A stretch of DNA of 64,000 nucleotides from Lepidodermella squamata (GCA_047495785.1 JBLDXI010000001.1:1550001-1614000), one strand, 5' to 3'; positions 37,052 through 60,136 are shown, counted from the first letter of the stretch. Notes: a model not told the origin generated them from the sequence alone. A program made the numbers and translations.

Positions 37052-39139
37052 ATGAGCCATTTTTTTCCTATATTGCTCTCGCTATGTCTTAGCTTATTTG
37101 CCTCAACCACGGCGCATGTCGATCAATGTTGGTCTTGCCCTGATCAGCAGCTTGGCTACATGTCCGCTGCTAATCGAACTTGCAACAGCCCACAGCAACA
37201 AAAATGCCCGGCAGACTCTAAACATTGCATGGTAAAAAATAGTAGAAAATTCCATAAAAACCCTAAAAATTCGCGAAATTTCAGTATTCAAGGGAGCCGT
37301 TTGGCCACTATTTAGCAGCAGCTATTTCCGAAGCTGCTGAATGGCTGGAGAGTTCTCGAATTTTCCTCGTCGACGAAGATATCGGCCTACCGAACGACAC
37401 TCTGAATTGCATGATCGAGCAAATGTTGGAGCTGAGGCGAAATTTGACCGATGTCCTCAAGCCATCTTGTAAACAGTTGGACAGTTGGTTGAAGGCGAAT
37501 AACAAGTCGTCCAAGTCGCCGAATTCCCGCCGAGCTGCAACTGTAAACGACGCTATGTTCATGTGCGACCCGGTGGGTTGGAAATTCTGCGACGCGGCCG
37601 TTGATTTCGGCGGCTGGGTGTGGCAAGCGGCTGATTTGGACAGCAAATGCATGTATCCGGTCAATTACCCGGCTGTCGAAGATTACGAGGCGGATGAGAC
37701 TGGAGGTGGGGACGACAATAAAGCGAGCAGCTCGGAGGATTTGGGCAAAAAACGGCTACGACGAGCGGCTGTGTCTTCTTCGAAAGGAGGTATTGAATGT
37801 TTGAACGATGATGACAATAATATTAAGGCCAAGGAACCGTTTTCGCCCGATGCTACGCGTCCTCCAGTTACTACAACGACAACGACCACAACCACCACTA
37901 CAACCACGACTAGAACTACGACCAGGGCTAAGACTTCAAACGCGACGACAAAAGAGCAAACTTTCACGCCACCGTCGATGTTGCGACTTGGTGGCACTCA
38001 CGTGATCAGCGGGAAAAGTGCGGCTTTGGTCTCTGGTGTCGCAATCAGTATTGAGCCAAGGTTCAGCAAAGACCAGGCTGATGTTTTAGCTGTGCTTCAA
38101 TCCCGTAATTACACTAGTTGGAACAAGCAGGCTGATGCTCATCGATGCGTGGATACTATGCTCTGTCTGCGTACTATCTTAGGTCTAACCAAAGTGTAAG
38201 TCAAATAATAATCTCGACAAAACTTTTCCAAGTTTCAGTTTATTTGGATTTTCGGGTCGCCTAATTTCTGCTAAAAATTCGCAGAAATTTCAAAAAAATT
38301 GGAAAGTGCGGCAGTTATAATAATTATCCGAAATTCAGATTAAAAGACACATAAGAAATCCTATTATTACAGCGTGTCCCATAAGTAACGCAAGCAAAGA
38401 AATTACACGGAAAAGGGTTCAGAAACTACAAGTAACCAAGTAACATGGCCAAAATCCTTTGAAAAATTCATAAAATCAGGAGAACTGTAATCACATATGT
38501 CACTTGGTAACGGGATTAAGACAGTCCGGAGAAATGTGGTCCAACCGGGTAAAATACCGAAAATTACCGAACCAGCTACCATCGGGGTTTCCCGGGTTTT
38601 CTGCAGTAACGTTTTTATTTCTTCGGATAAAGATGGAATATTCTCACGGTAGGTTCAGTATAATAAAATTAGTTGAATTTCTTACAAAAAATATGCCAAA
38701 TTTAACTAGTATTTAAAAAAATAGTTGCGCAACTTCTTGGACACGCTGTAAGGTTTACTGAAGGTATCTTATGGCTATTTTCCATTATTTCAGTCATACT
38801 GGACGATTTTCATGTTGCTCTTGGAATAACTGCAACCCGGGGCCTTCTCCGAGTTCAGCGATGCTACGCGCTGGCAACAGCCCAAGTGAAGGTCGTGTTG
38901 GTGGGCTTGATTCGCCGAGTACGAATCGACCAACGCTGAATGACTCACCAGCCGGCGGGGCCAGTCAGGCGCAAAATACTATCAAGCCTACCAAGCCAGT
39001 CGCGCCGGCCGGTGAACGACCTGAAAAATTAAGGTCTACTGAATCACCGGCCAAATCGTCATCAACACCGAGTAAAACCAGCCACTGGAAAATCGTCTCA
39101 TTTTTTGCATTTTTCTACCATTGCTTCACAAGATTTTGA
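37052..39139 (+). CDS. Ly6/uPAR (three-finger)-like protein 1 with very large loop inserts
   Basis: Signal peptide, then CWSC..C..C..C. Exons about 37052-37231, 37285-38195, 38794-39139. Ends the domain with CCSWNNCN, followed by a Ser/Pro stalk and a short hydrophobic tail. Confidence 0.7.
38370..38748. mobile_element. Tc1/mariner-type MITE in an intron of Ly6-like gene 1
   Basis: Left end TA|cagcgtgtcccataagtaacgcaa, right end ttgcgcaacttcttggacacgctg|TA: imperfect TIRs with a TA duplication. Confidence 0.75.
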
Positions 39140-39375
39140 GACTACAATAATTATTATCCGCGAAATTATTTTGCATTTTATTAGCGTAATATCATAAAAA
39201 TAGTAGTAGTAAAAAAATTATTAATTGCCTGCGTGTGTTGGTCAACATGAGCAATATAAATATTACACTCTATTTGGCAACCGTATGTCGTCGGCCTCAG
39301 GTAATAAATTCAGGTGGGGGCGAACAGTGCGTGGACCATTTCGGTCAAGTGACACCACTAGACAGTGCAATCGCA

Positions 39376-39382
39376 TATAAAA
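39376..39382 (+). promoter_or_regulatory. Putative TATA box of Ly6-like gene 2
   Basis: TATAAAA about 60 bp upstream of ATG 39439. Confidence 0.4.
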
Positions 39383-39438
39383 AGATCACTGCGGGCCAAA
39401 TCTGTCTGCTCTAGCAACAAAAGAATAACAAGCTTCAC

Positions 39439-40291
39439 ATGGCAACTCGGCAATTTCTATGCTTAAGTTTAGCTGTTGGCGTTGTATCGGCTTTGAGGTG
39501 TCACGTCTGCCCAGATGACCCATTTGGAGCTAACGGTTGTACGTTCCAAGAAGCTGTTCTTCAAGAGTGCGGCCCTTCTTTAGGCAGCTTACCCGAATTA
39601 GCTTCGAGCAACTCAAATACCTTATACCGATGTTTGGTAATTTTTTACAATTTAATTTTAAATTTTAAAATTTTTGTTCTTATTTCATAAGCACACTCCT
39701 CATCGAGACATTTTCAAAAACGCAGTTTTGAAAGCAATCGGCTATTTCCAGCAACTGCAGAAGTCAGCTAACCCGTCGGCAAGTGGAGCAAGATTTGGCC
39801 TGTCGCCGTCAAAGCGGGATTATTTGGCTTGTATCCAAGTTTTGCAGGAAGCCCATTCGAACCTGTCGATACCGTCGCCTCGAAACACGCGCTTCGTTTT
39901 TCAGTGCGACACCTCGGACGTGTGCCGAGCTGGCAACATTGAAAAATGGGTCATCGACACGATCCTAGCGAAACCTGAGTGCCAAAAAGTAGCTGGTATT
40001 GACATTGATTTGAAAATAAGAAAAATGGCGCAAACTGGTGTTTTGTGCTGCGATTTTGACGGATGTAATGGCCCGTCTTATTGGATGAGTAAGTTGATTG
40101 GGATGAATGCTGCGGAGAACGAGACCACCTCGACTTCGACGTCTACAACAACTTCGAGAGTACCACCGAAAACGACTTCTACTACAACAACGACAACGAC
40201 TGTTACTTCGCCTACGACAAGCGAGCGTCCTCAAGAAAAGATTGTCGCTAAAAAGCGAAAACTTATTCAATTAGGTTGGTCGACTGATTAA
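39439..40291 (+). CDS. Ly6/three-finger-like protein 2 with Thr-rich tail, probably secreted
   Basis: Exons 39439-39636 and 39692-40291. Signal peptide, LRCHVC...CCDFDGCN, mucin-like tail, no hydrophobic C-terminus. Confidence 0.78.
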
Positions 40292-40637
40292 GGTGTATTT
40301 TACAATTATTATTATTAGCAAAATAGCTCTTTTCCGACGAATAAAAAATAAAGTTGTTAACTCCAATTTCGAGTTTTGAAACTTGAAGTCTTATATAGTT
40401 ATGGGCGTATTATATTCAAGTCCGTGACGGATGCACCTTTAAGACTATATTAACGTCATATAAGAACGGATCAGCTATCAGCTAATAAAAACGACTTTTT
40501 TGAAGGAGGAATGAGGGTGGATAAGCGGCAGATCAACTCAACATTTTAATATATAAATTAATAAAAAACTGGATATCTGTCGCTAAAAATAATTTTACTT
40601 CGATTCTTTTCCAGTAAGAAACTAATTAAAGTTGGGT

Positions 40638-42173
40638 TTAAAATTTGCCGTCGAAGCTTTTGGACCAGCCAGTCAGGCCTACGCCAACTATCGTAAGAGC
40701 TGATGCGAAGGCAAGAGCCAAAAAGCTGCGAATACCAGAGATCTCTCGAAGTAGAAAAACACCGAAAATTGACGAAATAACAGTTGGAAATGTCCCGATA
40801 ATCGGAAACGTCACGGCTACCGACAAATTTTCGTTTGCGACAAATCTGCGGAAATATATAACGAAATTTGAAAAATTCTTGAAAAATTTCCGAAAAATTA
40901 CAAAGCAACTGTAGCGATGCCCCATATCACGCCTGAAACAGCGGCTGGTACTATCACCTTTTTATTGATAATAGGCTTCGGATTAGTGACGTAGTAGGTG
41001 AAGAAGATGAGGGTTGACATCAAATAAATGCCCGAGTATTGAGAAAAGACATAATCAAGCCCTTTGAATAGAAATAGAAACTTGATTAGCTATTAAAAGT
41101 GACGAAGTAATTGCAGTGAACTTACCACTTCTGGAGGATCGATATCCTTTGATTACAGTATGTTCTCGAACGTAATTCCACGGGATGAAAGCGGTTCCGT
41201 AGAAGACGCCTTTAAAAAATGAATTGATTAGGGTTGAATAACTGATTTCGATTCAAATCGAACCTGCTGCGATAGCTAAGGTTAAACCGATCCAGCGTCT
41301 ACAGCTCCGAGTTAAATGCCCCAAAAATACGTAATCATCAGGAATCACAGGTTGAGCGTCCTCGGCGGTTGGTGTTGAAATTAATTTCTGGGCATGTCCA
41401 TTGCTCGTAGTCGAAAGACCATTTGTTGCTCGGTAGAACTGACTAATCGACTGCCTAGCTTCGCCATTTGCTTGAATTTCATGACCAACAAGGCCAGTTT
41501 GACTACTCTCAGCATCTCCGGCTTTGAGGCCTTTCTTCGCAGGGCGGACAAAAGAGAAGCTCACGGCCCTGTAACATCGGTTAAAAATTGATAACGCGAA
41601 AGTTGGTGGAACTTACGCGCAAACACAAATGAAAACACCGACGTAGTTGAGGATAGCATTTTTCGGTACTTGAGGGCACATGCCAAAATCACCTAAGCCG
41701 AACCGACTCACTCCCCACCCAACTATTATGGATGTACAGTTCCATAGTGTAGCGCCAATAGGTATTCCAATCAGTTGAATGACTGGCGCTACACAGGCAT
41801 AACCAAGCGCCCATAGCGCACCTCCTATAACGGTTATTGAGTAAAATTGAGGGTCATTTCGATTAAGCTGGACGACGAGTCCGACCATCCACACACTGCT
41901 GCAGAATACCCATTGCATAAAAAATCCATCGTAGACGTGGCAGGTCTTCAACGGGAGGGGAGCAAGGCCGAAGAAAAACACCGCTACAGCACAAGCGATG
42001 TAGCCTAATAGGAGTGGCGGAGATTCGGCGGTGTGTTGGACGGACTCGACGGTATGCTCACCCTGATAAGGCCCTGTCCAGTTAAAACCGCACGGTATCC
42101 ATTGGTAATCTTCGTCGAAATTAAGCTGTATTGACGGTGATGATGAATTCAGTATATCAGTCTCAGCAAACAT
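40638..42173 (-). CDS. TMEM144: TMEM144-like (DUF1632) multi-pass membrane transporter, copy 1
   Basis: Motifs LLGYIACAVAVFFFG, DGFFMQWVFC, GGALWALG, LWNCTSIIVGWGVSRFGL, NYVG, LDYVFSQYSG, NENLSVAVTFPII, REISG. Multi-exon. Confidence 0.85.
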
Positions 42174-43414
42174 GTCTATTAAATGAAAGACGATTATGAT
42201 AAGGGGAAAATCTAGTTCGTTAATTGCGGAAATCAACAGAGCGATTTAAATGTGTCAAAATTTTCGGACTTGATTAGCACTATTGGGTTATATAAAGTGC
42301 GCATTTGAAAATCACGATTTTAAAGGGGCGTTTTTCATTTGGGAGTTGAGTACATCAGCCAGGCCTCGATATTTTTTGACTATATTGCCCTATTTATCGT
42401 TTAATGAATGAAATTGGGACTCATTAACAAGAAATTGATGTAATTTTCTGAACTATCAAAAAGTCTTTTAAGAAAACGGCACGAAGCGGAAATGACTCCG
42501 GGAATCGTAAGCAAATACTACATAAATGTGGCCTCTAATATACGTAATCTATGGGCGGAGGCGGATTTGCATTTAAGGGAGCCATGTGATGATTTTAATG
42601 GTCGATTAAAATAAAAGTATCCTTGTTAATAATGATTGTCCGCATGCGAAGAACGCGGGAGTTTTTATTCGCGAGCTGATGATTCCGCGATATATTTATG
42701 CATAAATAGCCGGTACAGAACCAGCATGAGTCAACGCGCGTAGTTGCCTTCGCAACGGTATAAACGAGCCTGAGTCACGTGAAGCTAGGGCAGGAAATGT
42801 TGATAGCTCGTTATTTAGGTCGGAAGGGGAAAAATAAATCGATTAGTCTAATAATAATAAAAATGCGTATAATTTTCAAGTAGGCGCGATGTTTTTGTCG
42901 CGCAGGTCATTTCAGCATAACTACTACTACGGGTATTATAATTAAAAGTAAACCGTTGTTCGGATATTTTTAAACTGCCCGTCGCGCCTACGGATGTTCG
43001 CGAGCCTCTGCCATTCATAAATTTATTATGCGTAGTCCCAAAAGATAGAAAAAATCGAACAATAATTACACGCGATTTTTTCGATGCGTCTGACGTTAAT
43101 TATAAGCGCATTTTACGCTCAAATAATTAGGATGAATTGAACGAACAGCATAATTGAATGATAATTGCATAATTTGAGGCCAGTCCGATGCACTCGAAAA
43201 ATCGCTTAAGCAAAAAATTCGGAACAAAAAATACGTATAATAAAATAACCCGGCATATATTTGACCGCGGATTGCACCCCATCGAGTCTAAGTATTGACT
43301 ATAAGATTGACAGCAGCTTGACAAAATGCTAATTAGGAATATCAGGTGTTCGACGAACGTGACTTCGGATCGGTTCGGGTTGCTAAAAAATACCAAGTTG
43401 AGCGGAAAAGAAGG

Positions 43415-44150
43415 ATGAATCAACACTATTATTTATTAGCGAAATTGTTATTGGCTTTATTTTTTGTTGATACTTCACGGTCGCTGCAGTGTTATTCCTG
43501 CCCCTATCCTGGCAACAGCGGTTGTGATTTCTCCGAAACTAAGGTTCAGCTTTGCCCTAGTTATAGAAATCATGGTGGAACCCCAAGATGTGCAGTAAGA
43601 ATTGATTTCGGTAAAATTGGAAAAATGATCAAATAATTAATCTATAGTATGGCCTGGCGCCCTCCTCTCCAAAAATGTATGAATCCGTGTTAAGGGAAGC
43701 TATTGGAATGATACAAAGCAATGCTAGCTTGTATTCCGATCAATGCTTGGCTTTCAGGCTTAATAATTTCCTACAAACTGTGAATGGGCTGAGCGAAAAT
43801 CCGATCAAGTCAACATTTACCTGCATTTCGAGCTTACTATGCGGCAGTTACAGCATTGGCGACTACATCGTTCGAAGTCTGCGTGACGACTGCACGGCTG
43901 CTAATTCAACCCTATTCGACCTGATAGAGCCTGTTCTGCTGGGACAACAAGAACCACTCATGAAATCAGTGTGCTGCAACTGGAATTTGTGAGATCGATA
44001 TTTTTAGATTATTCTTATCCACCTTAATTTCGAATTTTCAGATGCAACAAACCATCCACAGCGTCAAAGTCCTTTCCCAGCCGGATAATATTCCTATTAG
44101 CTCTTGGATTGTTTACTTGGACCAAGATTAGCAATAAAATAGCACAATAA
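43415..44150 (+). CDS. Ly6/three-finger-like protein 3, probably GPI-anchored
   Basis: Three exons. Signal peptide, LQCYSC...CCNWNL|CN, hydrophobic tail RIIFLLALGLFTW. Confidence 0.78.
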
Positions 44151-44243
44151 TGCTAAAAAATTAACAATATCCGTCGTTTATTCGAGGTATCATAGTTTTA
44201 CACTGAGGACATGAAATCACAAGGTTATCACAAATTTGCTCGC

Positions 44244-45620
44244 TCATATTGGTTCTGGCTGGTAGCCCTTTGACCAGCCCGTTAAACCGACGCCGATTAT
44301 GGTTAGGGCAGACGCCAGTGCCAGAATTAGAAAGCTTCGGAGACCGCTGATTTCGTGAAACATAAATATACCGAAAAATGCGGCTATAACACTTGGCAAA
44401 GTGCCAATTATTGGATAAGTAATCGCCACCGATAGAATTTCGTTCGATAGGAATCTATGCAAAATAATGTAAAGCTGATATAAGCTCCTATCATCAGCAG
44501 ATCAAACTTACAAAGCAACAGTTCCTAGGCCCCATAGGATTCCTGATATTGACGCGGGCAGGATTAGGGATTTGCAAATTATTGGCTTCTTTGAGATGAT
44601 GAAGTAGACGAGAAATATTAGGCTGGATGCGAAAATAATCCCGCTGAATTGCGAAAATACGTAATCGAGTGCGCTTCTCGAGGCTCTTTGTCCTTTCACG
44701 ACGGCGTGTTCGCGAACAAGATTCCACGGGATAAAAGCTGATCCGAAGAAAAATCCAGAAATAATAGCCATTGCGACTCCGAGAAGATGCCTGATCTTGC
44801 TGGAATGGACCTTTTTCAGAAAAATATAATTTTCAAGGTAATCGGAATCCCGCGAATCGGGTTTCGCCAAAAAAGGTGGCTGGCTATAGGAATGGATATC
44901 TCCATTCCCGAGAAATCCGTTGTTGTTGGAAGTAGTTTGATGAATGTGATGACTAGACAAAATGTTAATTTCAAGATCTTCCGGTGTATCAGGTTTTTTT
45001 ATGCATAGCTTCAAAAGTCTAAGATCTGTTTGCACAAAAGTGAAAGCAAATGCCCTGTAAAAAAATTGAAATTTTGCCGTTTAACTGTAACATTGAGTTG
45101 GAAAAACTTACGCTACAACGCATATGAAGACGCCGATTGAGTTGAGAAATTCGCTGTTTGGAGCATGAGGACATAGACCGAAATCGCCTAAACCGAACCG
45201 GCTTACTCCCCACCCGAAAACAATCGACATACAATTCCATAGCATCACCCCGATAGATAGTCCGACTAAATTCATAGCTGGAATGCACAGGGCGTTGCCT
45301 AGAGCCCAAAAAACCCCTCCAACGACGGTGAGCGAGTAGAATTGAGGGTCTCCCCGGGTCAGTTGGACTACGAGGCCAACTAGCCAAGCGTTAATGCATA
45401 CGACCCATTGCGCAAACATTCCGTCGTAGGTTTTGCATAGCTTCAACGGAACCCCGTTACATCCGTAGAAAACAACAGCGGCTGCACAAGCGACGTAGCC
45501 GAAGAGAAGGGGCGGCGAGTCGGATTTGCCGTGCATTGACGACGTTTCATCGCCCTGAAATGGGCCCGTCCAGTTATAACCGCACGGAATCCACCTTAAA
45601 CCGCTGCTTTGGTTAGACAT
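44244..45620 (-). CDS. TMEM144: TMEM144-like transporter, copy 2
   Basis: Same motifs as copy 1, including the shared N-terminal WIPCG(F/Y)NWTGP(Y/F)QG, ALDYVFSQFSG and NEILSVAITYPII. Confidence 0.85.
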
Positions 45621-46027
45621 TTTTTTCGCTCAATTTTTCATCAAACATATTTTCATATCTTCGTGACATATCTTCGTAACCGGTCTCATTTTATAATATA
45701 ATATCGTCTATAAATCAATTTTGTTGTTATACCAAGAAAGCCGTCTTATCAAGGCCTTAATTACGCGTGTTTTTTTCACGTGTGTTTTCTTTGCGTGGGA
45801 TAACAATATCTTCCAGGTGACAAAAAATGTATAACTATTATTATGTATGATGCGCGTTATGAAGCGTAGGCGAAAGCTCATGCTGACTACCTGCGACATT
45901 AACTACTGTTTTTCACGAATATCGCTAATGCTACGCATTTCAAAATTGCAGCAGGGACGTAAATTTATAACAGACTTCAACGTAACCTAAACACGTTGCA
46001 TTAATTCACTCGAAGAAAGCTGATGAG

Positions 46028-48826
46028 ATGAGGGCAGTAGCCTGTTTGTTTTGGATTACAGCTGCCATTTGGCTTCCTCATCAGGTTAAATAACTCATTG
46101 TTCAATTAGATTTTCCTAAAACAGGCTTTACAGGTACATGGATTGGCCCTCTGCGCCTTACCGCAGCCGGAAAACGGGGAAATTCTTATGAATGGAACAA
46201 TTGCCGTGGTTAATACAACCATATCGGTGGCGAACGGGTCTGAAATCGTCCTAACTTGTTTTTATGGATACAAAGAGTTAAATTTTACGACCTCAATTGC
46301 TGCGACATGCCTACCGACCGGTCAGTGGTCGTCCGCACTACCAGAATGTCTCAAACCTTCAAAAATCAGTGCTGTTCAGGTAGCTTATTTCCATCTCACC
46401 GGTCTATTGAAGTACCCATTTCTTATTTAGAATTCTACAGCTGAATTCGAGGATGATGTTGAGTTCTCGCCGGTCGAGATGAATGTTACAGAATCTTCTT
46501 TACGCATGCAGGATGGAACAAGGCAGGCTAACAGTGTTGAGTTCGAAACAGCTTGTGGTCCTGCTCCGAGCATTCGCAACGGGAAAGTCGCGATTACAAG
46601 CTCAGCGACGGGAGAGGTCCAATGCTCGACCGGATACTACTTCGACGGCAGTATCAAAGACGTGATTTGTACATCAGCTGGGAATTGGTGGTTGCCCCCA
46701 GGCGATTCGCCATGCAAGCGTAATGAAAGTGTCGCAACAACTCGCGCGTCTTCCCCATTCAGGATTAAAACAGTAGCCTCTACAGCTAGCACTACTACCT
46801 CAACAAGAGCAGGTCTCGTCGCTAACGATAAGTTCCCAATAGATAAAGTTCTCCAAACAAACTACTCCGCTGCAACCAACTCGGTGCTAAGCTTCGTTTG
46901 CAAGATGTCGCGGTCCATTCCTGATGGTGTCGTCTATAATGTTTCCCTCGGCGAGGTGAATGCTGATGGGTACGCATCTTCTGGTTCAAAGATCCGGTTA
47001 GTTTGTTTGAAACCGGATTTTTCCGTTCGATATGGCTCTGATATAACGACATGTCTCGCGGATGGATCATTCTCGGAAGAGTTCGGGACATGCACCTTAA
47101 ACATTAGTAAGATAATTCCATAGGGATTTGTTACCTCGGATTTTAATTTTCGAACATAGAAACCACACCGATAACTCAAAAGACTACAACGACCACTACT
47201 GCGCCAAAGGATTGCCCGGTGCCTCAAATTGAGTTTTCGACGTTCAATTTTACGAAGAAGATCTACGGCGGGCAGAAGGTACCACTGGAATGCGTCAATG
47301 GCTATCTAGCCTCAGGAACGCAATGGAGCATCTGCCACTTCAACGGCACATGGTCGAACGAGTTCGGCACGTGCATTAAAGACGGTATGTGAAATCATGC
47401 GGTATGTAGTGTATGACTTGCGAAAACTCTTGATTTCAACCTCAAACACATATAGACATCTTCGATGCTGTCTTCAAACGGCGGTTGCAGGATCTCCAAG
47501 CTTTGATAGCCGCTGGTTCGAATGTGAATGCGACTGATAAAGACGGATGGACGGCTTTGATGTGGGCGACTTCAATTCGAGACCAGCAGGCTTTCCAACT
47601 CTTGCTCAAAAGTGGCAGCGACGTCAACGCGAGGAACAAAGCTAATTCAACTGCCCTTTTGTTCGCTGCGAAAAACGGAGATACATCCTCGGTTTCTCAA
47701 TTGTTAGCCAATGGTGCGGATGTGAATTCGGTTAACATGTTCGGATCAACGCCTCTCCTATTCGCAGCAAGAAATGGATACTCTGAAACGGTGGGCGTCT
47801 TGCTAGACTATGGGGCTGATGTCAAGGCCCGAGATGAAGGCGGGGATTCTGCTTTCCTATGGTCTGCTCGGATTGGGAATTTGGATATCATGAGGCGACT
47901 TCTCGCGAATAATGCAAGTGTCAATGAGCAGAATAAGGACCGTGAAACTGCCCTTATTATCGCGGCGAAGAAAGGCAACGCTGATATAACCAAGTTCCTG
48001 TTAACCCATGGGGCCGATACGGAGGTCGTTGATGTTTTTGGGATGACAGCTGAGAACCACGCTGATTCTAATGGCTTCGTGAAAGTTTCATCTTTCTTGA
48101 AAGCTAGGGCCAACTCCAAAGAAGTTTCTACTACGTCATCTCTCCAGCTTAATATCACGACTCAGCCACCGACCAGAGCATCTAGAACTACTAAATCAAT
48201 CATCAACTCTACCGTTTCAAAGGCATCTGCAACTACAAAGTATACCACAACAACAGTAGAGGCTCGGAGCATGACTGTTCCAATCAATGAAAGTCTGACC
48301 TCCAGCCAGACTACCGTGGAGAGTATCATCACCTCAACTTTCCCTACAACACAGTCCTCTCTTGAAACTGTAATAACCGAATCAACGTATTCCAGTGTAG
48401 TTATTGATGAGACTACGACGACGACTCCAACCTCAGAACAAGCAGTAACCGATGCCGTTAGTTCAACATCTGCAGTTGTATCAATTTTTCCAGAAAACTC
48501 CGATTCGGCGTCCACCATTCAGCCGTCAACCGAGGCTGATCTCTCCCTCAGTACCGAACTATCGTCAACGACAGGCGAATCAACAGAAACAGACCCTACA
48601 GCTTCAGGTAGTTTGATCACAACATCGTTTTTGACGAATTTATCTTCATTCCTAATTATAAGGTGTTCCAATTACCTCAACCCAAAGCAGCACTGAAACC
48701 TCTGACGTCACAGGCAGTACACTTTCGATTGATATTACAACCGAAACGACTACCGCAACCCTCGACAAGCTAGTGGATGAATCTGGTTCGAATTCAACGC
48801 TAGCCTCGACGAGCTCTGCAGCTTAA
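46028..48826 (+). CDS. Signal peptide + 4 sushi/CCP + about 7 ankyrin repeats + Ser/Thr tail (paralogue A)
   Basis: Signal exon MRAVACLFWITAAIWLPHQ; four CCP modules; a phase-1 intron at 47385-47455 joins CCP4 in frame to the ankyrin exon; TAA at 48824-48826; AATAAA at 48861. No transmembrane segment. Confidence 0.78.
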
Positions 48827-49107
48827 CTTGAATTAGTCTCAACTCGTTTGTAAAAATGCCAATAAAGTAATAGCCATTTGAAGGCAGTCGTTTCTCGCTC
48901 TGGTATTACCTCTTGAAAAAAACTGTTCGCACTTGAGGCGAGTAACAAAAGGTTACTGTTTACCTTTCATCGCGGCTGTTGAGAAAAAACTCGAGTTAGC
49001 CTCTGTGAGCCTTTGTGAGCCGAAACAAAGAGGATTTGAACTGCTAAAACCCTTGCCGGTACATTCATTCAGCCGTCTATTTGATCTAAGAAATTTGGCA
49101 ACCCATC

Positions 49108-51255
49108 ATGGTCGGGAAAATAATAGGAGTAATCCTGCTATACGTCATCTGTGCGATTGATGCTCAGGTATCATTTCCCACCAGTTCCGCCATAAAATGA
49201 CATGGATTCACATTTCAGGACAGAAAAAATTACTGCGAGCTACCTCAATCTTATGATGGGAAAATCTTTACTGTTTCCCGCACTGATTGGTCTGGCAACG
49301 TGCCATCTGGGAGTTACGCCTCGGTCGTTTGTGGGCCTGGCTTCTCGGTGGTGGATGGAGCTGTAACAAGCTACTGCATCAATGGAACATGGCAAGCCAC
49401 TTTAGGAGATTGCAAGAAACTGCAAGGTATATACGATGATGCTTATGAATGCCTATGAACTGACTTTTCGTTTCTAGGCTCAACTGCCGACTGTACTTCT
49501 TCTGTGACGATTCCCAACGGCAATTTGATGCCCACAAGCGAAGCTGGATCGTTTAGGATTCAATGCAACTCAGGTTACTCGTTATCTGGGCTCGGCTACG
49601 TCTACTGCTATGCCGATGGAACATCTTCTACCCCGGGAACCTGCTCATGGCTAACAAGTTTGTATTTTGTACCCAATTTTCTAGGCAAATCGTTTGATTT
49701 GAAACTTCAGCAACTGTACCGACCCCGACGATGACACAGCCAACTCCACAACCCCGAAATATGGTTTTTGATTGTTTCTCTCAACTGAAATGCCTTGTCA
49801 TTATCTATTTTGCAGTGTTATTCAAGTAAAATTGATAATGGAGTGATTTCAGCGAGTGGTGTTGCGACAACCACCAGCCAACGCTTCGGCCACGCTCCTG
49901 GGACTACGATTTCCCTAACTTGCAACCGAGGTTATGCTCTAGTTGGCGCATCCACCGCCGCCTGTAGATCGGACGGTTATTGGACGCAATCTCTCGGCAA
50001 TTGTCAACCCCTCCCGCCTAGTGAGAAAAATGGTCAGAAATAGCTTCGTGAATTATAGTCCCTTTTTCAATAGCCACAGCAGTCCCTACTACCAAAAATC
50101 TATTCCAATTCGGAGGCGGGCCCAACTTACCCCAAGCATCTATGCCGCCCGTCAACTACTGCTACGTCCCAGAGATGCCCTACGGCACCATCTTTGTGGC
50201 AAGCACAGGAGGGGCGAATCGCAACACTGCTCGGGCTAAACTGTTCCACCGTATCGCTCCAAATACAGCGGTAACCATATCCTGCGACGATGGCTATACT
50301 TTAGCCTATGGAAACGGTCAAAGCATCTGCAGGGATAACGGAGTTTTCTCAGTACCTCTAGGCGACTGCATACCTATTTCAAGTACTCATTTTTTGAAGA
50401 TTTTTCAGCGGTAATTGTTCTCTTGTTACAGCCACCCCTCGTACCCCTAGGACAGCTCCTCCAAATAGGGTAGCTATTGATATAGTTATGACTACAACCC
50501 CTCGGCGGACGACCGCATCGCAGCAAGATCTTGCCACATCTCTGATAGATGCAGTCAAGCGAAACAACGCTGCCGATGTCAACTCTTTGATCAACACGAA
50601 GAATGCGAATGTGGAGACAAAGGATAACCAGGGCAGCACTCCTCTTCATATTGCGGCAGCCAATGGTTACATGGCTATTCTTCGATTGCTCCTCGACAAG
50701 GGCGCGAGCCTTGAAAGCCTGGATGGAGCAGGCGCTACACCTTTAATCGTCGCTGTCACAAATGGGCAGCAGGAGGCTACTAGGTATCTTAGTTAATAGT
50801 TTTGAATTACTTTTAAGGTGGAATTTTTAAGGCTGCTTCTAGAGAGAGGCGCTAATGCTAACGCTGCGAACTCAGCTGGTCTATCGCCGCTTGTGATTGC
50901 GGCAGCCAAGGGTTATGCTGGAATTGTAGCGCTTCTCGTCAACTTCAAAGCCGATATAACAGCCCGCGACAACCAGCAGGCGATTGCGCTTACCTTAGCC
51001 GCTAAAAATGGCTACACAGACGTTGTCACCGCGCTGATTTTGGCGAAGTCTGATGTGAACGTGCAAGACAGCTCGGGTACTACGCCGTTGATGTGGGCGG
51101 CGAAGAATGGCTATGCTGACATCGTTTCGCTACTTCTGAATGCTCGCGCTGACAGAAATCTCAAGGATAACAATGGCTACACAGCTGAGAATTTGGCGCG
51201 CAATAATGGCATGAACGATATAGCGGATATGCTTCAAGCAAGTTCCAGAAAATAG
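49108..51255 (+). CDS. Signal peptide + 4 sushi/CCP + about 7 ankyrin repeats (paralogue B)
   Basis: Signal exon MVGKIIGVILLYVICAIDAQ; CCP modules starting CELPQ, CTSSV, CYSSK, CYVPE; ankyrin repeats GSTPLHIAA...GTTPLMWAA...GYTAENLA. No transmembrane segment. Some internal splice sites are uncertain. Confidence 0.75.
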
Positions 51256-52371
51256 CGCGAAAAATCGCCAACACGAAAAACTTTGTAAGGAGATTTTAGG
51301 AATGCATGTATGATATAGAAAAATGCAATAAATTATACAAGGCTTAAAAAAATGAAAAATATCATATCTACGTTATAGATTTCAGTTGCCAAGTCGAAAA
51401 GTTATAGGAGAAAATTAGGAATCGATGAATGAGCTGTACTGTATCTGATTCAAGCCTAATTGATTTCAGCGTTTGTGTGGGAGCATGCAGCAGAAGTAGT
51501 CGATATCGTGATGACTTGTCAAGTTCAATTAAACAGAAACATGGTACCTATTTCTCCGTCCATGTTTCAATTTTGATATTATTAAAAAACCGATGCAATT
51601 GAACAGAATAATTTCTAGGCAATACTGAATAAGGCTATGTTGAATAAATAGAACGGCCAAGTTCTATAATACTAGGTGCACTTATCGATCGCTTGGTGAC
51701 GAACATTAATGACTAGAAGGTACGTAGGCCCTAAAACTTCTGAAACAAACGAAAAATTGTCGGACATGAAAATTTCATTTTGTGACTTTCTTTATTGCTC
51801 TGTGCCGTTTTGCGTGACCCCAATTTATCACAAGCTAATAATTCCCGCAACGATATTCAACGTGAATAAAAAATTTCCAATATAATAATTTTTTGCTAAT
51901 TTTGTGTAATGAAGAGCCCCAATTAAAATTAAGGCAACCCACGCCCAGAAAATAATGAGTGTCAATTACTAGGTTAACAAAAAAACCGGACCATAATAAA
52001 ATCCAGAAATCGCAAAAATTATTACTATAATAAATAATGAAGTGTTGCTAAAAATAGCTCTAATCGGCGATGTAGATGTCCTATGAAAAGGTAATCCGAG
52101 CACGCACCTGGGTAGCCCAAGTCTGGTGGTTGTTTTTGGGTTTTCAAACAGCTGATTGTAAAAAATAATAACAATATAATAAAACCGCACGTGCTGTATT
52201 CTAAGCAGCCTAGGCATGAGACTGGTTGGGGCACACTTTTCGCCAGCCAAGTGGCGCACGTTCCGAAGATAATTTTCACTCTGCTAATTTTAAGCCTCGT
52301 TTGAAGAGCTTTATTCTCGTCCACGCAACACCGATCTCCATTACCTACCTGTGCCTAGCCACAACTTTGTG

Positions 52372-53151
52372 ATGAATGGAATCTGCCAATGTCGCAACTA
52401 TTTACTATCACCTCCAAGCATAGCTAATTTAGCAATTTATTCAACTGGTAAGAAAATTACCCCCAAGTTATCAGGAGACCTTGGTGACTCATCTTTCTCG
52501 ATGATTTTTTCTAGCTTTGATCATTTTATTTTATGCGACGTCAACTTCCGCTGATCCTCTGGCTAAACAACGGAGAACAGGCCAGTTACAATATTGCCAT
52601 AACCTAGGGCTTCGCTGTTGTTTCAGCTCAGAAAGAGTAATTTTTTTATTTTTTTACTAATTCCGGCCATGAAATTTTTTCTAGAAAACTGGATTCACAA
52701 TTTTTTTCAAATTTCTGCTGAATTCCTTGAGAAAATAATGCTGCAGTTTCAGGGTCGATTTTAGAAAATTCTAAAAAATCCACCTTAATTTTATTGTAAA
52801 TGTTTGAGCCAATCGAATATGTTTGAGCGGGTGAAGGTATCGAAAATAATAATTTTCAAACATATTTCCACCCTGTAGAACGATTAGGTCCTGACACAAA
52901 TCAGTGATCTTTGATAATTTTTCATTTTTTTCATTTTTTAGAAGAAGTGTTGCGGACGAGAATATAGCTGCGGAGAATGCATGCGGCGGGGATACTGCTC
53001 AGCCGCGGCTGTTTTTATTGGCCTGGCGAAAGCGCAACGGTTAGACGACGATGTCGAATTGGAACAAGAAAAACACCTCGAGTTGGCCGAATCGAAGAAG
53101 CTTTTCCATCAACCGGACACAATTCATAAACGATTCGTTTTCGTGAACTAG
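52372..53151 (+). CDS. Small secreted cysteine-rich (knottin/ICK-like) prepropeptide, 135 aa, 3 exons
   Basis: Exons 52372-52447, 52515-52636, 52942-53151 splice in frame. They encode a signal (LAIYSTALIILFYATSTSA), then DPLAKQRR, then TGQLQYCHNLGLRCCFSSERKKCCGREYSCGECMRRGYC, then an acidic tail. Confidence 0.7.
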
Positions 53152-53732
53152 CGAAATTTCTTAGCTATTATATAGAAAAAATATCAATTTCATATTATAC
53201 TATCATCGACAACGGTGCCATTTTCTAAAAAAGTTCAGAAAACCGACAAATTGACTAACATATCTGCTTGTGATCTTTCGGTTCGATTCAAACTATAGAT
53301 TCTCCTCGAGTTATACAACTATTATTATCGCCGTCATTTCAGCTTAACTTTCAAAGAAACTTTCGCATCTCATCCTTGTTTCAATCGACAGGAATCTCAA
53401 AAACATTATCATGCTTTAAATCAAAATTGAAATGAAGGTGATTAGATTTTTTAAATAATGTCGTCTGAATTGAGTCGAGCCTTCGATTTGACAAACGAGA
53501 CATTAATAACGAAAAATAAAACATCAACTGCCGCATTTTCTCGCTTTTTTCAATACGGTTTAACCATTAATAATCGCGTTTAATTACATCGGAGTGCGGG
53601 TTACACGCGCACGCCCCGTGCCTGCTGAATTTTATTACTTTGACCCATATTTTCCGGCATTTATCACTCTCATGTGGGTCATCTTAAAAGCTTGTGGTAA
53701 ACACGATTTTCATGTAGATTTTGCTGACGGAA

Positions 53733-55113
53733 ATGATGAGCATCACAGAAGAACAGATGAAAGTGGCTACTGATTACGGCGCGTGGTTGCTGAAATACTA
53801 CGATTTCCCACCGGCCGGTCAGGAGTTTGCACGTGATCTATTCGCTCGATCGCATGCTCAGAACATATCGTTCAAGTCGCTGGAAGAGGCAGCCTCTGAC
53901 CCGCAGCTGGAAACGATTTTGCGACCGGTTTTGGCGAGACTTCGCGCGGCTAGGGCTGAAAAAACCGCTGCGCCCCCGCACACGCCATCGCCTGAGAAGC
54001 CGTCGTCTTCGAAGCAGCAAATGCTGGTGGTGACGAAGCCAGCCGGCGCGTCGACCCCTAGCCCGATCGCGGCGACGCGTCAAACAATTCATGAGCAGCA
54101 ACCAGCACCGCCGATGGCTGTTGCGAAGCGGCTATCGCCACTTTCTGTTCCACTTTCTAAAGGCGCGAAAAGACAAATGGTAGCTAGCGACGCGAGACCG
54201 GCTGATCTGTCTATTCCGAAACCAGCCAAGAAATCGGTCCGATTCGACTTGCCCGATAGCCTGCCGCCGCCGCCGAAGCAGGCTAACGCCAGTCCTGTCC
54301 CGCCGCCCGCTCAACCAGTCCAGAAGAACGAACGCATATTGGGCCCGTTGAAGATCAATGCCAATGTCGCAGCCTACCTCAATAGCGTAAGTTGAAATGG
54401 TGAAATGGTGAAGTTGAAATTATTGAATGATAGGTCCTGGGCAAGGAAACATAGGAAATTAGATTTAAATGTTAAACTTTAAGATGTTTCAATAAAAATT
54501 TAAATTTTGAAATAATTTTGAAATTAATTTTTGAAGTTAAGGGAATTTTTCAGGCGTTTGAAATGCATCCAATGGCTACGGTAGAACAACTGCAGGTGTT
54601 CGCCGATTACCTGGGCACCCATGTCAGCGAGGTGGCCCATTGGTTCGAACAGAAGCGGGACCAGATGATATCAGCAGCTCCAGTGCCAGTATCTAAACCG
54701 ACCAAGTCGAAGGCCGATAGCAAAGTTGCTGCTGGTCCAACGAAACCTGCTAGCCCTCGCAATCAATCAGGGAGCAAAGCCGATCTGAAAGAGGGCGATC
54801 TTGAGATTCTTGAAAAGGTATTTAATTACCAATTTTATTCAAATTTTCATAAGCTGATTTCTTTGATTTTAGGAATTTGCTGATTGCCAGGATCCACCTG
54901 AGAAGGAATTGAAACGAATTGCCAAGCTAATAGGTTCCTCGCTGCCGATGGTGAGCAATTGCGGAAATTTAAAATTTTGATTTACTTTTTTTGCGATATC
55001 AGGTTAGGGTTTGGTTTGCTAATCGCATGCAACTGGCTCGATTCAACGCGATGAAACCGGCAGCTGCGAAGGCCCCGCAGGGCGAAAAAGCAACGCGTAA
55101 ACGAGGCGGCTGA
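53733..55113 (+). CDS. Divergent double-homeodomain protein 1
   Basis: Exons 53733-54386, 54554-54817, 54873-54950, 55003-55113. HD1 is YLNS|AFEMHPM...VAHWFEQKR and HD2 is ILEK|EFADCQDP...M|VRVWFANRM. Confidence 0.72.
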
Positions 55114-55289
55114 TTCTGAGATACAATTCAATTTGAAAACGAACTCTAATTTTCTAGCTGATTTCTATCAATTTTGATTATTTTTCTACGAATTCTGGCA
55201 TAGTCTGAACACATCATGATTCATTTGTTATTTTTCTACCAGTTTTTCCGTTAATAAATCTCATTCAATTTTAGTCTTTTTTCTTGAAA

Positions 55290-56826
55290 ATGGAAGATCA
55301 GAACCGGTTGTACGCCCAGTTCTTACTGTACTACGACTGGCTGCCTCGAGAATTAAAAGACATAGCTTTGCTGAATTTCACTTCGAAATACGTCTCAAAT
55401 TCTTCCGCGAAATGGAGGGAGATAAAAGCAGTTGAAAACCAGCCGATTCAATCGAAAGCCGGTCATTACCCACGCCCTTATGTTTTCAAAGGTGATATCG
55501 GCTCAACTGCCAAAAAAGTTGGCGAATCTAAACGAAAAAGATCGGCTAAAAGACCTCGTAGTTCTGCGACTGGAGGAGCGAAGAAGAAAAAGAGGCCTCG
55601 CGTGGTATCTCAATCGATCAAAAATCAGTCTACGGCACCGGAAATTCATCCCGCAAAGGCTGGGAACAGTCTCGTTGCCGAACAGCTTGTGAAGAAATTG
55701 GAACAAGTGGGTAAGGCCAGCAACGTCGAAAAGCTGGAAAAAGCTGTAGTCGAAGTGAAACAAGTTGAAGCTAAAACCGTTAGCAGAAAATCTCCGCGGG
55801 CTAAATCCGAGCAGACCAATTTAATTGAGAAGGCTGGGAAAAAGAATGAAGTTGTCGATAGCCAGCGAAGATCTTCGAGGCAGTTGGCGAGGAAGACCAG
55901 CAAAGCGAAAGAGGTTGCCCCGAAAACGGATCCACGGCTTGAATCTCCTCAACCTGTCGTGAAGGAACCATCGTTGGGTTCAGAAATCGATCGGTCTAAA
56001 AAGCCGAAGCTCAGCACTTCGATTGAATTCGGAAAGGATGGCTTGAATCTTGATGGGAAGCTAAGTAATGCCGCCGAATTGCCTGCCGAAGCCGTTAAAT
56101 ACTTCATTCAGGTAAGGCTAAGGATTTGTTGCAGCATTTATCATTGAAAAATTGGCGATAGAAATTTCAAGATTCTCGAAACTTTGTTGAGATCTCGAAT
56201 ATTTAACAATTTTTATTTGCAATCAGAACTTTCGAAAGAACCCGTTTCCACATCAAAAGCGAATTTCAAGCTTGGCAAGTCGATACAAGCTACAACTGGG
56301 ACAAGTTTGAGCATTATCGACATCATATTTTCCCCTTGGAAATTTTTCATTTTTCCCCATTAAGGTGGCTAATTGGTTCTATTATCATCGCAAAGCCCTG
56401 AATATCACCAGCGAAACTTCGGTGGATGAAATTCGTCGTCGAACTGCCGAAGCTCACCCTGAGAGTGACTGCTCTCTATCTCCGGAAAATTCCGTCTCGT
56501 TAAATACCCTTCCTAACGCTAATGCAGTGGACAAGCCACTGGTTCTAGCCCCGGTTAAGGCTGATGTGAGTTATAAGCTGAACAGCCGAGCCGTGTTTAA
56601 CGGCTATGAAAAACGCACTTTAGACGACGAATATCGCAACATTGCCGGGCGTATTCCGACGCAGAGTGACTACAAAGCTCTCGCCGCAAATCTGTCTACG
56701 ACTGAACGCCGGGTTAGTTATCAAGCAATCTGATGATTTTCCCGAATCCGGTCAATGTTATGATTCCAGATTGCATACTGGTTTACGTTGCGAAGATGGC
56801 GCGAATTCGCTCCCGAAGTGAACTGA
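55290..56826 (+). CDS. Divergent double-homeodomain protein 2
   Basis: Exons about 55290-56111, 56227-56304, 56365-56712, 56770-56826. HD1 is FIQ|NFRKNPFP...Q|VANWFYYHR and HD2 is RAVFNGYEKRTLDDEY...R|IAYWFTLRR. Lys-rich linker with NLS-like KKKKRPR. Confidence 0.72.
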
Positions 56827-57606
56827 TCGAACAAGCGCAAACTATTTTTTCGATGATTTTATTTTTATTATAAATTTAATAAACCACGATATATTGAAGC
56901 ATGAATCGGAAGGTCTCTTGGAACACATCTGCAAGGCTTTGGCAATTTTTACCGTATGTACGGTGTATCATGGTAAAAAACAGCGTTTTGCGTCAGAGAT
57001 GCGAAAATAAGATGCTATAAATTAGCCAATGATTATTGAGTTGATGTGCGCAGGTGGATCTGTTACATAAGGCTGTATAGTCAGCGACACTATGTATATG
57101 GCTCTCTGTCCTAGTGCCAGCTATGTGCGAAAAGGCGTGGTTGTAATATACAAAAACGCAAAATAATGCGGGTTAGTCATACGAGAACGTTTCACACTAT
57201 ATAGAGGCGCGTCCTCCAACGGGGCAATTTTTTTGTACCGATGTATAATGAGAACTAGTCATGATACCAGCTTAATGATAGCTCTATTGAGATAGCCCTA
57301 TATCCGAGTTTTTCAAACACCTTTGCAGTCAGAGAGGGACGAGTAAGGGACACAAAAATTAAGTTATTATTCAATTTTTCTCATCTTTACGTGCTTAATA
57401 CACTGATGACGCTTCATATTATTGTATTGGTCGTAGGTGTATTTTTTGGAGCGCACCTACAAGCAGCTGAAAAAACTAAAAAACGATCGGCACTAGACTT
57501 ATTCCTTGAAATTATTTGCACTGCCCATCATTTTATTATCTTCATTCAAATTTACGGAAAATTTCTTGTCATCTTTGTAGTTTTTAGGCGATTGTTTTTA
57601 GAAATA

Positions 57607-58292
57607 ATGCGAGCTGCGTTTGTTGGTGGAATTTTTCTGGCCTTGGCCTGCGCCAATCAAGTTTCGGCGCTTCAATGCTACGCCTGCAAATCAGGCTCTG
57701 GCAATGCCCTGGCGACGTGCAAGCAAAGCGACGCCATTAAAGTCACCTGCGAGAGTAGCGAAAATCAATGCGCGGTAAAAAAAATCGAATTTTCGAAATT
57801 TTAATTTCCAACTTTGAATTCCCAGGCTTCTAAAAGCCCGACAAAAGCAGCCGTGAAAAACTATTTCGATCAGGCGATTGCCAAGGCGACTCCCGTCGCT
57901 GAAAAGTTAAAAAACACGACTTGCCTCGATGTTTTGAAGCTGTCAAGCGATAATGTTCAAGCCCTTCTTCCGGACAACGTCACAGGCAACTCGTACGGCT
58001 GTGCGAATAAGGAAATTTGCGAGGGCTTCAAATTATCGGCGATCTTGGCCCCGGTTTGCCCCGCCGATCAATACGGCGAAGTTCACACGATCATGAACAA
58101 CCTTGAAAAAAGCGTAAATTTAATTTCGATTTTTCCGATTTTTGCACTTCGAAAATAATTTTTTAGGCTGCCGTGATCTGCTGCGGAACCGATTTGTGCA
58201 ACAAGTACAACTCGGCTGCTGGAACCAGCATCCAGCTTCCTTTCTTTGTATCGGCCCTCGTTCTGGCATTCCTGTTCATCAAGTCAAACTAA
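57607..58292 (+). CDS. Ly6/three-finger-like protein 4, probably GPI-anchored
   Basis: Signal peptide, LQCYAC...CCGTDLCN, then NSAAG and hydrophobic LPFFVSALVLAFLF. Three exons. Confidence 0.82.
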
Positions 58293-58488
58293 TCAAAACT
58301 ACATCAGATCTTCCATCAATCGCTGTTATATGCATTAAAATTTGCAGTTATTTAATTTAGTCATTTTTCGTGTTGTGTTTTGTGCGCTTACTGCTCATAT
58401 TTTATTCCAGATAGTTAATCACGCTTTCGCTATAAAAATATATAAAAATATTTGATTTTTTTATTGTTAGTAGGTTTCTTAATGTAAG

Positions 58489-59239
58489 ATGACGGTATCG
58501 TCTTCCGGCCTGGCACTGTTGATAGCTATTTTGCTGTCAAGAAAATCATGGGCGTTACAATGCTGGACATGTCCCATCGACTCATCAAATTGCCAGCCAT
58601 CGATAGTTGTGTTAACAACGTGCGAATCTAAGATGGATAGATGCATCGTAAAATCTCTAAAATTTTATGATAAATATATTAATTTAATTAAATTTTAGGT
58701 TAAGCAACCCCCATTAACCACCAAGGTGACTATGATAAAAAATTCGGCTGTGTCAGAGGCTGCGAAAATCGATGGTGAAAAGGGGTTGTGTTCCCTTACG
58801 ATAACTGCTGCCCTCAATAAACTGCCCACTGTCCCACTCGATAATCGCTACATTTACAGCTGTGCCGCCCAATCGAATTGCGAAGTACTCAATATCGTTC
58901 AAGGTCTAACCTCTAATCAAAATACAAACTGCCCGTTGCCGAAGTATGAGAGCGCGATTAACTACCTCAAAGAGCTGGAAACTAAGGTGGGTAGTAACAA
59001 TTTGTTTTCAAATTTAATGGCTAATATTCCAATTTATTTAGGTCTATAGCTGTTGTTCAACGAACGGTTGCAACACTCACGCCGTTTCGCTATCGATAAT
59101 AAACGCCTACGTCAATGGTTCAAATGCGTCTAAAACGAAGAACTCGGCGTCTCGTGAAAATGGCCGAAATTACTGGTTGTGTCTCCATTTATTCGTTATT
59201 TTAGTTCCGATAATTTCACTGCCTTCACTCAATGCATAA
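58489..59239 (+). CDS. Ly6/three-finger-like protein 5, probably GPI-anchored
   Basis: Signal peptide, LQCWTC...CCSTNGCN, hydrophobic tail WLCLHLFVILVPII. Three exons. Confidence 0.8.
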
Positions 59240-59442
59240 AATTGGTGCAAATGATAATAATATTCTCGTGTGTACTCAGCCTATCACTCATTTGTTTGAA
59301 ATTTTTGAGTGCTACTAAAAAAACTCTACTAAAAAAATGTGATGACGGAAATGTTTTGGTGAAAATAAAATGGAGTTGGAAATTCTTAATTATTCCGTTT
59401 CACTTAAATTTAAAATCACAATAAGGTATTTCACCTGACAAT

Positions 59443-59651
59443 GGGATTAACGAATTCCGGATAAATTTGGCGAACTGGGTAAAATACCGAACAATTACCG
59501 AACAATTTACCATCTGGATTTTCCTGGTTTTCTCCGGTAATGTTTTATATTTTTTTGTTAAATCGGGGATAAATGATCAAAGATTCTTCTATTAGTTTCA
59601 ATTAAAAAATATTAATTTCCTAAAAAGGTTGCGAAATGTATGGGACACGCG
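59443..59651. mobile_element. Degenerate partial copy of the 38370-38748 MITE family
   Basis: gggattaa...gggtaaaataccgaa.aattaccgaac...ggttttct aligns by eye to 38512-38620. It ends in the TIR-like ttgcgaaatgtatgggacacgc. Confidence 0.6.
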
Positions 59652-59889
59652 CTGCTGTATTGCCTTAAAGATTGCCGCCAAGTCATTATAACGCGAAGAT
59701 TCCAGGTGCGCGCAAGCTGTTGGGGACATTCATTATTGGGCAATATCGTCAGTGTGAGGCGCTAAAGTAGTCTACATGGCTACTAGCTGGCGACATGGAA
59801 AATTCCCAGACTATGAATTGGAAGGTCCCAACATCGATCTTCCCCCTTTCCACAGTTCGCACTGCGCTTCGTTTTACTCAATCCTTAAA

Positions 59890-60136
59890 ATGCTTCGGCT
59901 GATTGCAGCTATAACGTTATTCTTGTCTCTCAAGTGCAGTAACCATGTTTTGGCTCTGACATGCCGCGATTGCTACCAGCAAACGGACGATGAAACGGGA
60001 TATCTCTGCAAATTTCATGAAACCATCGAAATGAATTGCTTTAGTTCGGAAAATCAATGCACGGTAGTTTGCTACCATTTTACAGTGTGTCCGTCAAATA
60101 ATATGAGGCTATTTATAGTCCAAAAGCAACAGCAAG
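59890..60136 (+). pseudogene. Ly6/three-finger-like gene 6, truncated or interrupted just after the start of exon 2
   Basis: Exon 59890-60063 encodes a signal plus LTCRDC..C..C..CT, followed by the family intron at 60064-60118. Exon 2 begins SKSNSK and then loses similarity; no CC..CN exon occurs later in the window. Confidence 0.55.

Follow-up and report, generated by a model that had tools for sequence, protein, structure and literature searches.

Do six neighboring genes of Lepidodermella squamata belong to the Ly6/uPAR (LU) superfamily, and if so, what has become of their second and third fingers? Three-finger or Ly6 domains are the all-beta scaffold of snake toxins, CD59, uPAR, TGF-beta receptors and Lynx proteins. 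The genes in question lie in a stretch of 64,000 nt (JBLDXI010000001.1:1550001-1614000, assembly GCA_047495785.1; G000:C1:1550001-1614000 in our notation), here called the window, and are numbered 1 to 6 by their starts at 37052, 39439, 43415, 57607, 58489 and 59890, all on the + strand. Gene models were rebuilt from the sequence and the exon joins were checked by script for frame and cysteine count; database and profile scans of the window genes were run exon by exon, and genome-wide searches covered the 121-Mb eukaryotic assembly of 151 contigs. The pattern that unites these genes is real. As an explanation we favor, with moderate confidence, a lineage-specific offshoot of the Ly6/uPAR superfamily whose second and third fingers have turned into helical hairpins within a stapled four-helix bundle.

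A common cysteine framework

An alignment of the first exons of the six window genes (A2) shows in every gene an ATG and a hydrophobic signal peptide, followed by the motif L/V-x-C-x-x-C..C..C..C, and in all six a GT donor lies exactly one codon past the fifth cysteine (Cys5), in phase 0. A first-pass annotation of the window had described this layout for six genes, and each turned out to have a real, ATG-initiated first exon, at 37052..37231 (gene 1), 39439..39636 (gene 2), 43415..43594 (gene 3), 57607..57774 (gene 4), 58489..58647 (gene 5) and 59890..60063 (gene 6).

Genes 2-5 each contain exactly 12 domain cysteines, the ten canonical LU cysteines in canonical order plus two extra ones (extra Cys A and extra Cys B), a count that had been proposed at the outset. 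Between Cys5 and Cys6 there are 73, 60, 60 and 56 residues in genes 2, 3, 4 and 5, respectively; the expected segment length of 50-70 residues therefore applies to genes 3-5 and is exceeded in gene 2. From Cys7 to the CC doublet the spacing is 41, 44, 36 and 39 residues, and this range of 36-44 agrees with the 35-45 residues or so anticipated. In the exon-2 alignment of 13 members from inside and outside the window (A5), the only invariant columns are four cysteines, namely extra Cys A, Cys6, Cys7 and extra Cys B, which are residues 33, 59, 65 and 78 of gene 4 exon 2.

A motif scan places CC-x4-CN at the end of the domain in genes 1-5, gene 6 being without the corresponding exon. The introns of genes 2-5 are 51-55 nt long with GT..AG ends, in a genome whose introns measure about 52 nt. 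Genes 4 and 5 have a phase-0 second intron four to five residues ahead of the CC: in gene 4, exon 2 (57826..58113, 96 amino acids) is followed by an exon with CC-GTDL-CN and a hydrophobic tail of the glycosylphosphatidylinositol (GPI) type (58167..58292), and in gene 5, exon 2 (58699..58986, 96 amino acids, identified by the exon-2 profile and A5) by an exon with CC-STNG-CN, N-glycosylation sites and a hydrophobic tail (59042..59236). The second intron of gene 3 is in phase 2 and splits the motif itself; exon 2 (43648..43988, exon-2 profile) carries the helical segments as far as CC-NWN, and removal of a 53-nt intron (GTGAGA..TTTCAG) joins it to exon 3 (44042..44150), which completes the motif with L-CN, restoring CC-NWNL-CN, and then encodes a hydrophobic tail. 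Gene 2 has no second intron, and its exon 2 (39692..40291) holds both helical segments, CC-DFDG-CN, a poly-Thr stalk and the stop codon.

Gene 1 is the most elaborate member. Its second exon (37285..38195; exon-2 profile E = 2e-28) encodes the helical segments, Cys6, Cys7 and the extra cysteines, and a phase-2 intron of 598 nt (GTAAGT..TTTCAG) leads to a third exon (38794..39139) with CC-SWNN-CN, a Ser/Pro-rich stalk and a hydrophobic tail; the junction restores the frame, yielding a protein of 478 amino acids with no internal stop. The earlier description of five complete genes ending in CC..CN is thus correct for genes 1-5, with the amendment that in gene 1 the motif sits in the third exon, beyond the long intron. 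A version of gene 1 lacking CC..CN was considered and is ruled out by the exon at 38794. As modeled, the domain of gene 1 has 16 cysteines and contains an acidic, poly-Thr, mucin-like stretch of low complexity with a run of about 14 Thr (window 37700-38000, exon 2), which separates extra Cys B from the CC; in gene 2, unlike in gene 1, a similar poly-Thr run is placed after the domain. Gene 6 consists of a lone first exon, the best match to the exon-1 profile (E = 2e-22), and within the window neither an exon-2 profile match nor an open continuation was found downstream of it, so that it is classed as a gene fragment or pseudogene.

Hydrophobic C-terminal tails of the GPI type, judged by eye, are present in genes 1, 3, 4 and 5. 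Gene 2 ends in the poly-Thr stalk, a basic tail and a stop, with AATAAA shortly after; because of this stop and signal and the absence of a hydrophobic tail, it appears to be a secreted form, and a search for a hidden GPI-tail exon downstream of gene 2 found none. The products are therefore likely to be either GPI-anchored or secreted, in line with the two forms proposed initially. Scored against the very genes of the window from which they were built, the exon profiles reach E = 1e-18 to 1e-32, and at other loci across the genome E = 1e-5 to 1e-9. A chance origin of the shared pattern is excluded.

Probable kinship with the Ly6/uPAR superfamily

The sequence signals linking these genes to LU proteins are weak and mostly point in one direction. 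When the exon-1 profile was compared with the sequences of solved structures, the ten best matches were uPAR domain 3 and CD59 (E = 0.013-0.07). In the exon-by-exon Pfam scan of the window genes, nothing was returned besides a sub-threshold CD59 match on gene 3 exon 1 (E = 5.9e-5; 23 bits against a cut-off of 33.9). Three full-length relatives with a single open reading frame (ORF), the metagenomic protein P0001 and the paralogues L002:2222-2767 and L002:1251-1949, match the Pfam models UPAR_LY6, Toxin_TOLIP, CD59 and QVR, all below the gathering scores, with UPAR_LY6 at E = 0.012-0.02 (15-16 bits against 24.8). Among the ESM Atlas neighbors of P0001 that carry a Pfam family, most are clusters of the three-finger clan, at a similarity of 0.81-0.88, which has the standing of a lead; gene 2 exon 2 alone was poorly recognized in the ESM Atlas, was uninformative and had no LU-like neighbors. 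The exon-1 profile also matches canonical 10-cysteine LU genes of the same genome (L009, contig C32), and these have their intron at the same position.

Taken together, these signals suggest LU kinship and fall short of formal LU membership. Descent from an LU gene is nevertheless most likely, because the weak matches are joined by the order of the cysteines, the closing CC-x4-CN, tails of the GPI type and an intron position shared with canonical LU genes.

An alternative to such descent is an independent cysteine-rich helical family, unrelated to Ly6/uPAR, in which C-x-x-C and CC-x4-CN arose by convergence or were acquired by exon shuffling, and which folds as a four-helix bundle, stabilized by disulfides, with a small N-terminal hairpin. 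That no LU model exceeds its threshold fits this explanation, as do the LU-like neighbors missing for gene 2 exon 2, the fold searches (described below) that yield helical bundles only, and the failure of the exon-2 profile to find an LU protein among 1.84 billion proteins or among the sequences of solved structures. An unrelated family would, however, have to account for the fact that three different kinds of search place most of their weak matches in the LU/three-finger clan, for ten canonical cysteines preserved in both count and order, and for a terminal CN, GPI-type tails and an intron position that are common to the canonical LU genes of this genome. We therefore regard this alternative as improbable.

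Predicted structure of the exon-2 region

Two AlphaFold2 models address the region between Cys5 and the CC. One was built for gene 4 exon 2 (96 amino acids) from the 13-row alignment A5, and the other for the intronless complete paralogue L002:2222-2767 (182 amino acids) from A3, a 27-row alignment of family fragments. The gene 4 model (m8bc4e48c2565) has a mean predicted local distance difference test score (pLDDT) of 75.9 and a predicted template modeling score (pTM) of 0.66. It contains four helices, the first two at residues 7-28 and 32-47 (pLDDT about 90 for this pair) and the others at 62-74 and 80-95, with an overall helix pLDDT of about 80-92. Values below 50 occur only around Cys6 and Cys7. 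In the LU head the cysteines pair as 1-5, 2-3, 4-6, 7-8 and 9-10, and the partners of Cys6 and Cys7 lie in the missing exons. The paralogue model (mean pLDDT 71.6, pTM 0.56) has equivalent helices at residues 70-85, 94-108, 131-143 and 150-163 (pLDDT 85-93), together with a finger-1 hairpin at 30-33/45-48 (pLDDT 53-73). The two long segments, which the first-pass annotation had called helix-like, are thus predicted to form helices rather than to be disordered.

The two models agree in placing extra Cys A at the beginning of helix 2 and extra Cys B directly after helix 3. Because of these positions and the topology of the chain, the two cysteines are expected at hairpin turns far from the head. 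A disulfide between them is most likely in view of their invariance, their location at the hairpin tips and the even number of cysteines.

These observations can be combined into a single scheme. Exon 1 would retain the signal peptide together with finger 1 and Cys1 to Cys5, and the last exon would retain CC-x4-CN of the LU head, usually followed by the GPI-type tail. In exon 2, helix-loop-helix hairpins would replace beta finger 2 (Cys5-Cys6) and beta finger 3 (Cys7-Cys8): helix 1 would leave the head past Cys5 and helix 2 return to Cys6, and helix 3 would leave past Cys7 and helix 4 return to the CC. The two hairpins may then pack as an up-down four-helix bundle, clamped at its base by the disulfides of the LU head and stapled at its far end by a sixth disulfide between the extra cysteines at the hairpin tips, and the fast-changing surfaces of the helices may set binding specificity. 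The earlier proposal of helical inserts in fingers 2 and 3 is upheld in that helices are predicted there, and is better phrased as a replacement of the fingers by helical hairpins. By analogy with other Ly6 proteins, the products probably act outside the cell, binding membrane partners or assisting them as accessory modules. The broader claim, that we are dealing with a natural beta-to-alpha conversion within one superfamily, which kept the LU head and finger 1, turned the other two fingers into helical hairpins of a bundle stapled by a new disulfide, and gave rise to an undescribed scaffold in about 20 genes, so far confined to one poorly sampled invertebrate lineage, we consider evenly balanced.

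Several points weigh against the scheme. The LU head is poorly modeled in L002:2222-2767, with finger 1 at pLDDT 53-73 and CC..CN below 60. Only finger 1 was modeled as a beta hairpin, at low confidence, and fingers 2 and 3 are helical, so that a mostly-beta three-finger fold was not obtained. Neither VIA nor Foldseek, the latter run on both models, matched a three-finger structure. The VIA matches are four-helix bundles only, over residues 64-168 of the paralogue model, at Z = 6-8, a range that is common for helical bundles; Foldseek gave no match with E below 0.6 for either model and only generic four-helix bundles. Of the fold that had been anticipated, a three-finger core carrying a helical bundle, the models reproduce the bundle, and the head is too poorly modeled for them to show the core. 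The models were built from shallow alignments of 13-27 rows that consist partly of exon fragments, and they represent gene 4 exon 2 and a paralogue rather than full-length window proteins; for P0001, the model provided by the ESM Atlas itself is poor (pLDDT 0.50). At the sequence level, none of the LU models PF00021, PF00087, PF25152, PF17064 and PF16975 reaches its gathering score, and gene 1, with its 16 cysteines and internal mucin-like stretch, departs from the simple scheme.

The modeling results also bear on a different explanation, in which the short beta fingers were kept and the added segments are amphipathic helices without a fixed bundle, flexible or binding lipids or membranes in the manner of apolipoproteins or saposins, with the extra cysteines pairing otherwise or between molecules. 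The helices do look amphipathic by eye, AlphaFold is prone to packing isolated amphipathic helices together, and the pTM of just 0.56-0.66 and the pLDDT below 50 around Cys6 and Cys7 of the exon-2 model leave room for flexibility. It is harder to reconcile with loose helices that the same four appear in two independent models, that the structural matches are compact four-helix arrangements of about 90-100 residues with a root-mean-square deviation (rmsd) of 3.1-3.5 Å, and that the extra cysteines are invariant and located at matching hairpin tips. To our judgment this explanation is as improbable as that of an unrelated family, and we retain the stapled bundle on an LU head as the preferred interpretation.

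Relatives, neighboring genes and known systems

The exon profiles reveal further loci downstream on the same contig (C1, 1.618-1.636 Mb) and on contigs C19, C63, C25 and C32, amounting to about 20 related loci in the genome, some of which are canonical short Ly6 genes such as L009. The downstream loci on C1 belong to the same family as the window genes, and their members align with the invariant cysteines in A5. Paralogues of the family are 15-43% identical to one another. Compared with gene 4 in exon 2, the window genes are 11-43% identical, in keeping with the strong divergence noted earlier, and they are separate paralogues, more divergent than the downstream cluster; the window set includes the secreted, mucin-stalked gene 2, the 16-cysteine gene 1 and the lone-exon relic gene 6. 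The paralogue L002:1251-1949 (G000:C1:1634750-1635448) resembles gene 4, with 43% identity in exon 2, and has lost the first intron, exons 1 and 2 being fused. Just ahead of the CC, where intron 2 normally lies, it carries 20 additional in-frame residues, which may represent an in-frame retained intron.

Outside this genome, the A5 profile matched three of 1.84 billion representative proteins. Two of these are relatives, P0001 (E = 1.4e-5) and P0003 (E = 4.5e-4), and both keep the extra cysteines and all four exon-2 cysteines; the third, a protein of 1941 residues aligned over only 17 profile positions, was taken as spurious. P0001 and P0003 are encoded by neighboring genes on eukaryotic contigs from ENA metagenomes and are 39% and 30% identical, respectively, to the neighboring gene pair at L002, which makes them an orthologous pair in another species. 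The contigs (L013 and L014; ERZ27332993 k141_25033 and ERZ23486764 scaffold_2200) are eukaryotic, 24-50 kb long and derived from environmental metagenomes, and the orthologous helical-finger pair stands there beside G protein-coupled receptor (GPCR), ANF-receptor and sushi-ankyrin genes. They derive from an uncultured relative of Lepidodermella squamata. Beyond P0001 and P0003, close relatives elsewhere are absent among the 1.84 billion proteins. A word-index protein search with the gene 4 exon-2 ORF gave no match, a search of solved-structure sequences with the exon-2 profile and P0001 returned nothing relevant, and a metagenome locus scan with P0001 yielded no confirmed relative. The literature search produced no description of a helical-finger LU variant, and the first-pass expectation that no described family has such inserts is supported by profile, Pfam, structure and literature searches alike, none of which returned one.

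The genes are intact and maintained, as seen from their open frames, GT..AG introns, a ratio of nonsynonymous to synonymous substitution rates (dN/dS) below 1 and the orthologous pair kept in the other species. Between young paralogue pairs dN/dS is 0.2-0.8; for pairs within the window, synonymous sites are saturated. The suspicion that exon-1-like and exon-2-like ORFs of different genes, or pseudogene copies, were joined artificially and that no 12-cysteine protein is made, which could draw on the lone exon of gene 6, the unusually long intron of gene 1 (598 nt against about 53), the fruitless word search with gene 4 and gene models built from genomic sequence alone, is very improbable given the dN/dS values, the exon order, 51-55-nt GT..AG introns and matching phases that genes 2-5 have in common with paralogues on other contigs, and the fusion of exons 1 and 2 in one open frame in two paralogues and in the metagenomic P0001.

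Immediately upstream of gene 1, the window contains the final exon of a GPCR of the rhodopsin family, which has a long tail rich in Ser and Thr (35738-36784, + strand; 7tm_1, E = 1e-8). Two transporter genes of the TMEM144 family (Pfam PF07857, E = 1e-36 and 2e-16) are located at 40558-42236 and at 44244-about 45500, both on the - strand, one after gene 2 and one after gene 3, tail-to-tail with the Ly6-like genes. The arrangement suggests that a block of one Ly6-like gene and one TMEM144 gene was duplicated as a unit.

If the preferred interpretation is right, this branch kept the cysteine head and exchanged two fingers for a bundle of helices; it would then reveal how much remodeling the three-finger scaffold tolerates, and its natural hybrid fold would be a target for structural biologists. 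That surveys of invertebrate Ly6 proteins relying on profiles could overlook genes of this kind would be explained as well, every Pfam LU model staying below its threshold on them. Should the helices form a variable binding face, the family would amount to a compact, disulfide-locked library of binders on the surface of a little-studied animal.

Among known systems, generic disulfide-bearing up-down four-helix bundles such as plant pectin methylesterase/invertase inhibitors, bacteriocin immunity proteins, talin rod bundles and de novo designs share the predicted topology and are of comparable size (VIA Z = 6-8, with 85-100 residues superimposed at an rmsd of about 3-4 Å). They differ in having no sequence relation (3-12% identity), and none of them is grafted on an LU-type cysteine head. 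Canonical LU proteins (CD59, uPAR domain 3, Lynx/Ly6 and the insect Ly6 proteins of the Quiver/Boudin type) resemble the window genes in the signal peptide, the L-x-C-x-x-C start, ten cysteines in order, the CC-x4-CN end, a single domain that is secreted or has a GPI-type tail, and an occurrence in tandem clusters. A 2026 survey of Ly6/uPAR proteins across 22 animal phyla, with no mention of helical fingers or of Gastrotricha, gives LU domains as about 60-90 residues long and mostly beta (PMC13719153), whereas the domain here spans about 135-170 residues, with fingers 2 and 3 predicted as helical hairpins, a sixth cysteine pair at their tips and LU models remaining below threshold. A further comparison is provided by L009 (G000:C32:2820500-2826500), which comprises two canonical Ly6 genes with a Lys-Arg site in finger 3. 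These 10-cysteine genes have the same exon-1 layout, a phase-0 intron one residue past Cys5 and CC-NYDG-CN; in contrast to the window genes, their finger 2 is short, Cys5 and Cys6 being separated by about 15 residues, and they are without the extra cysteine pair and the long helical segments.

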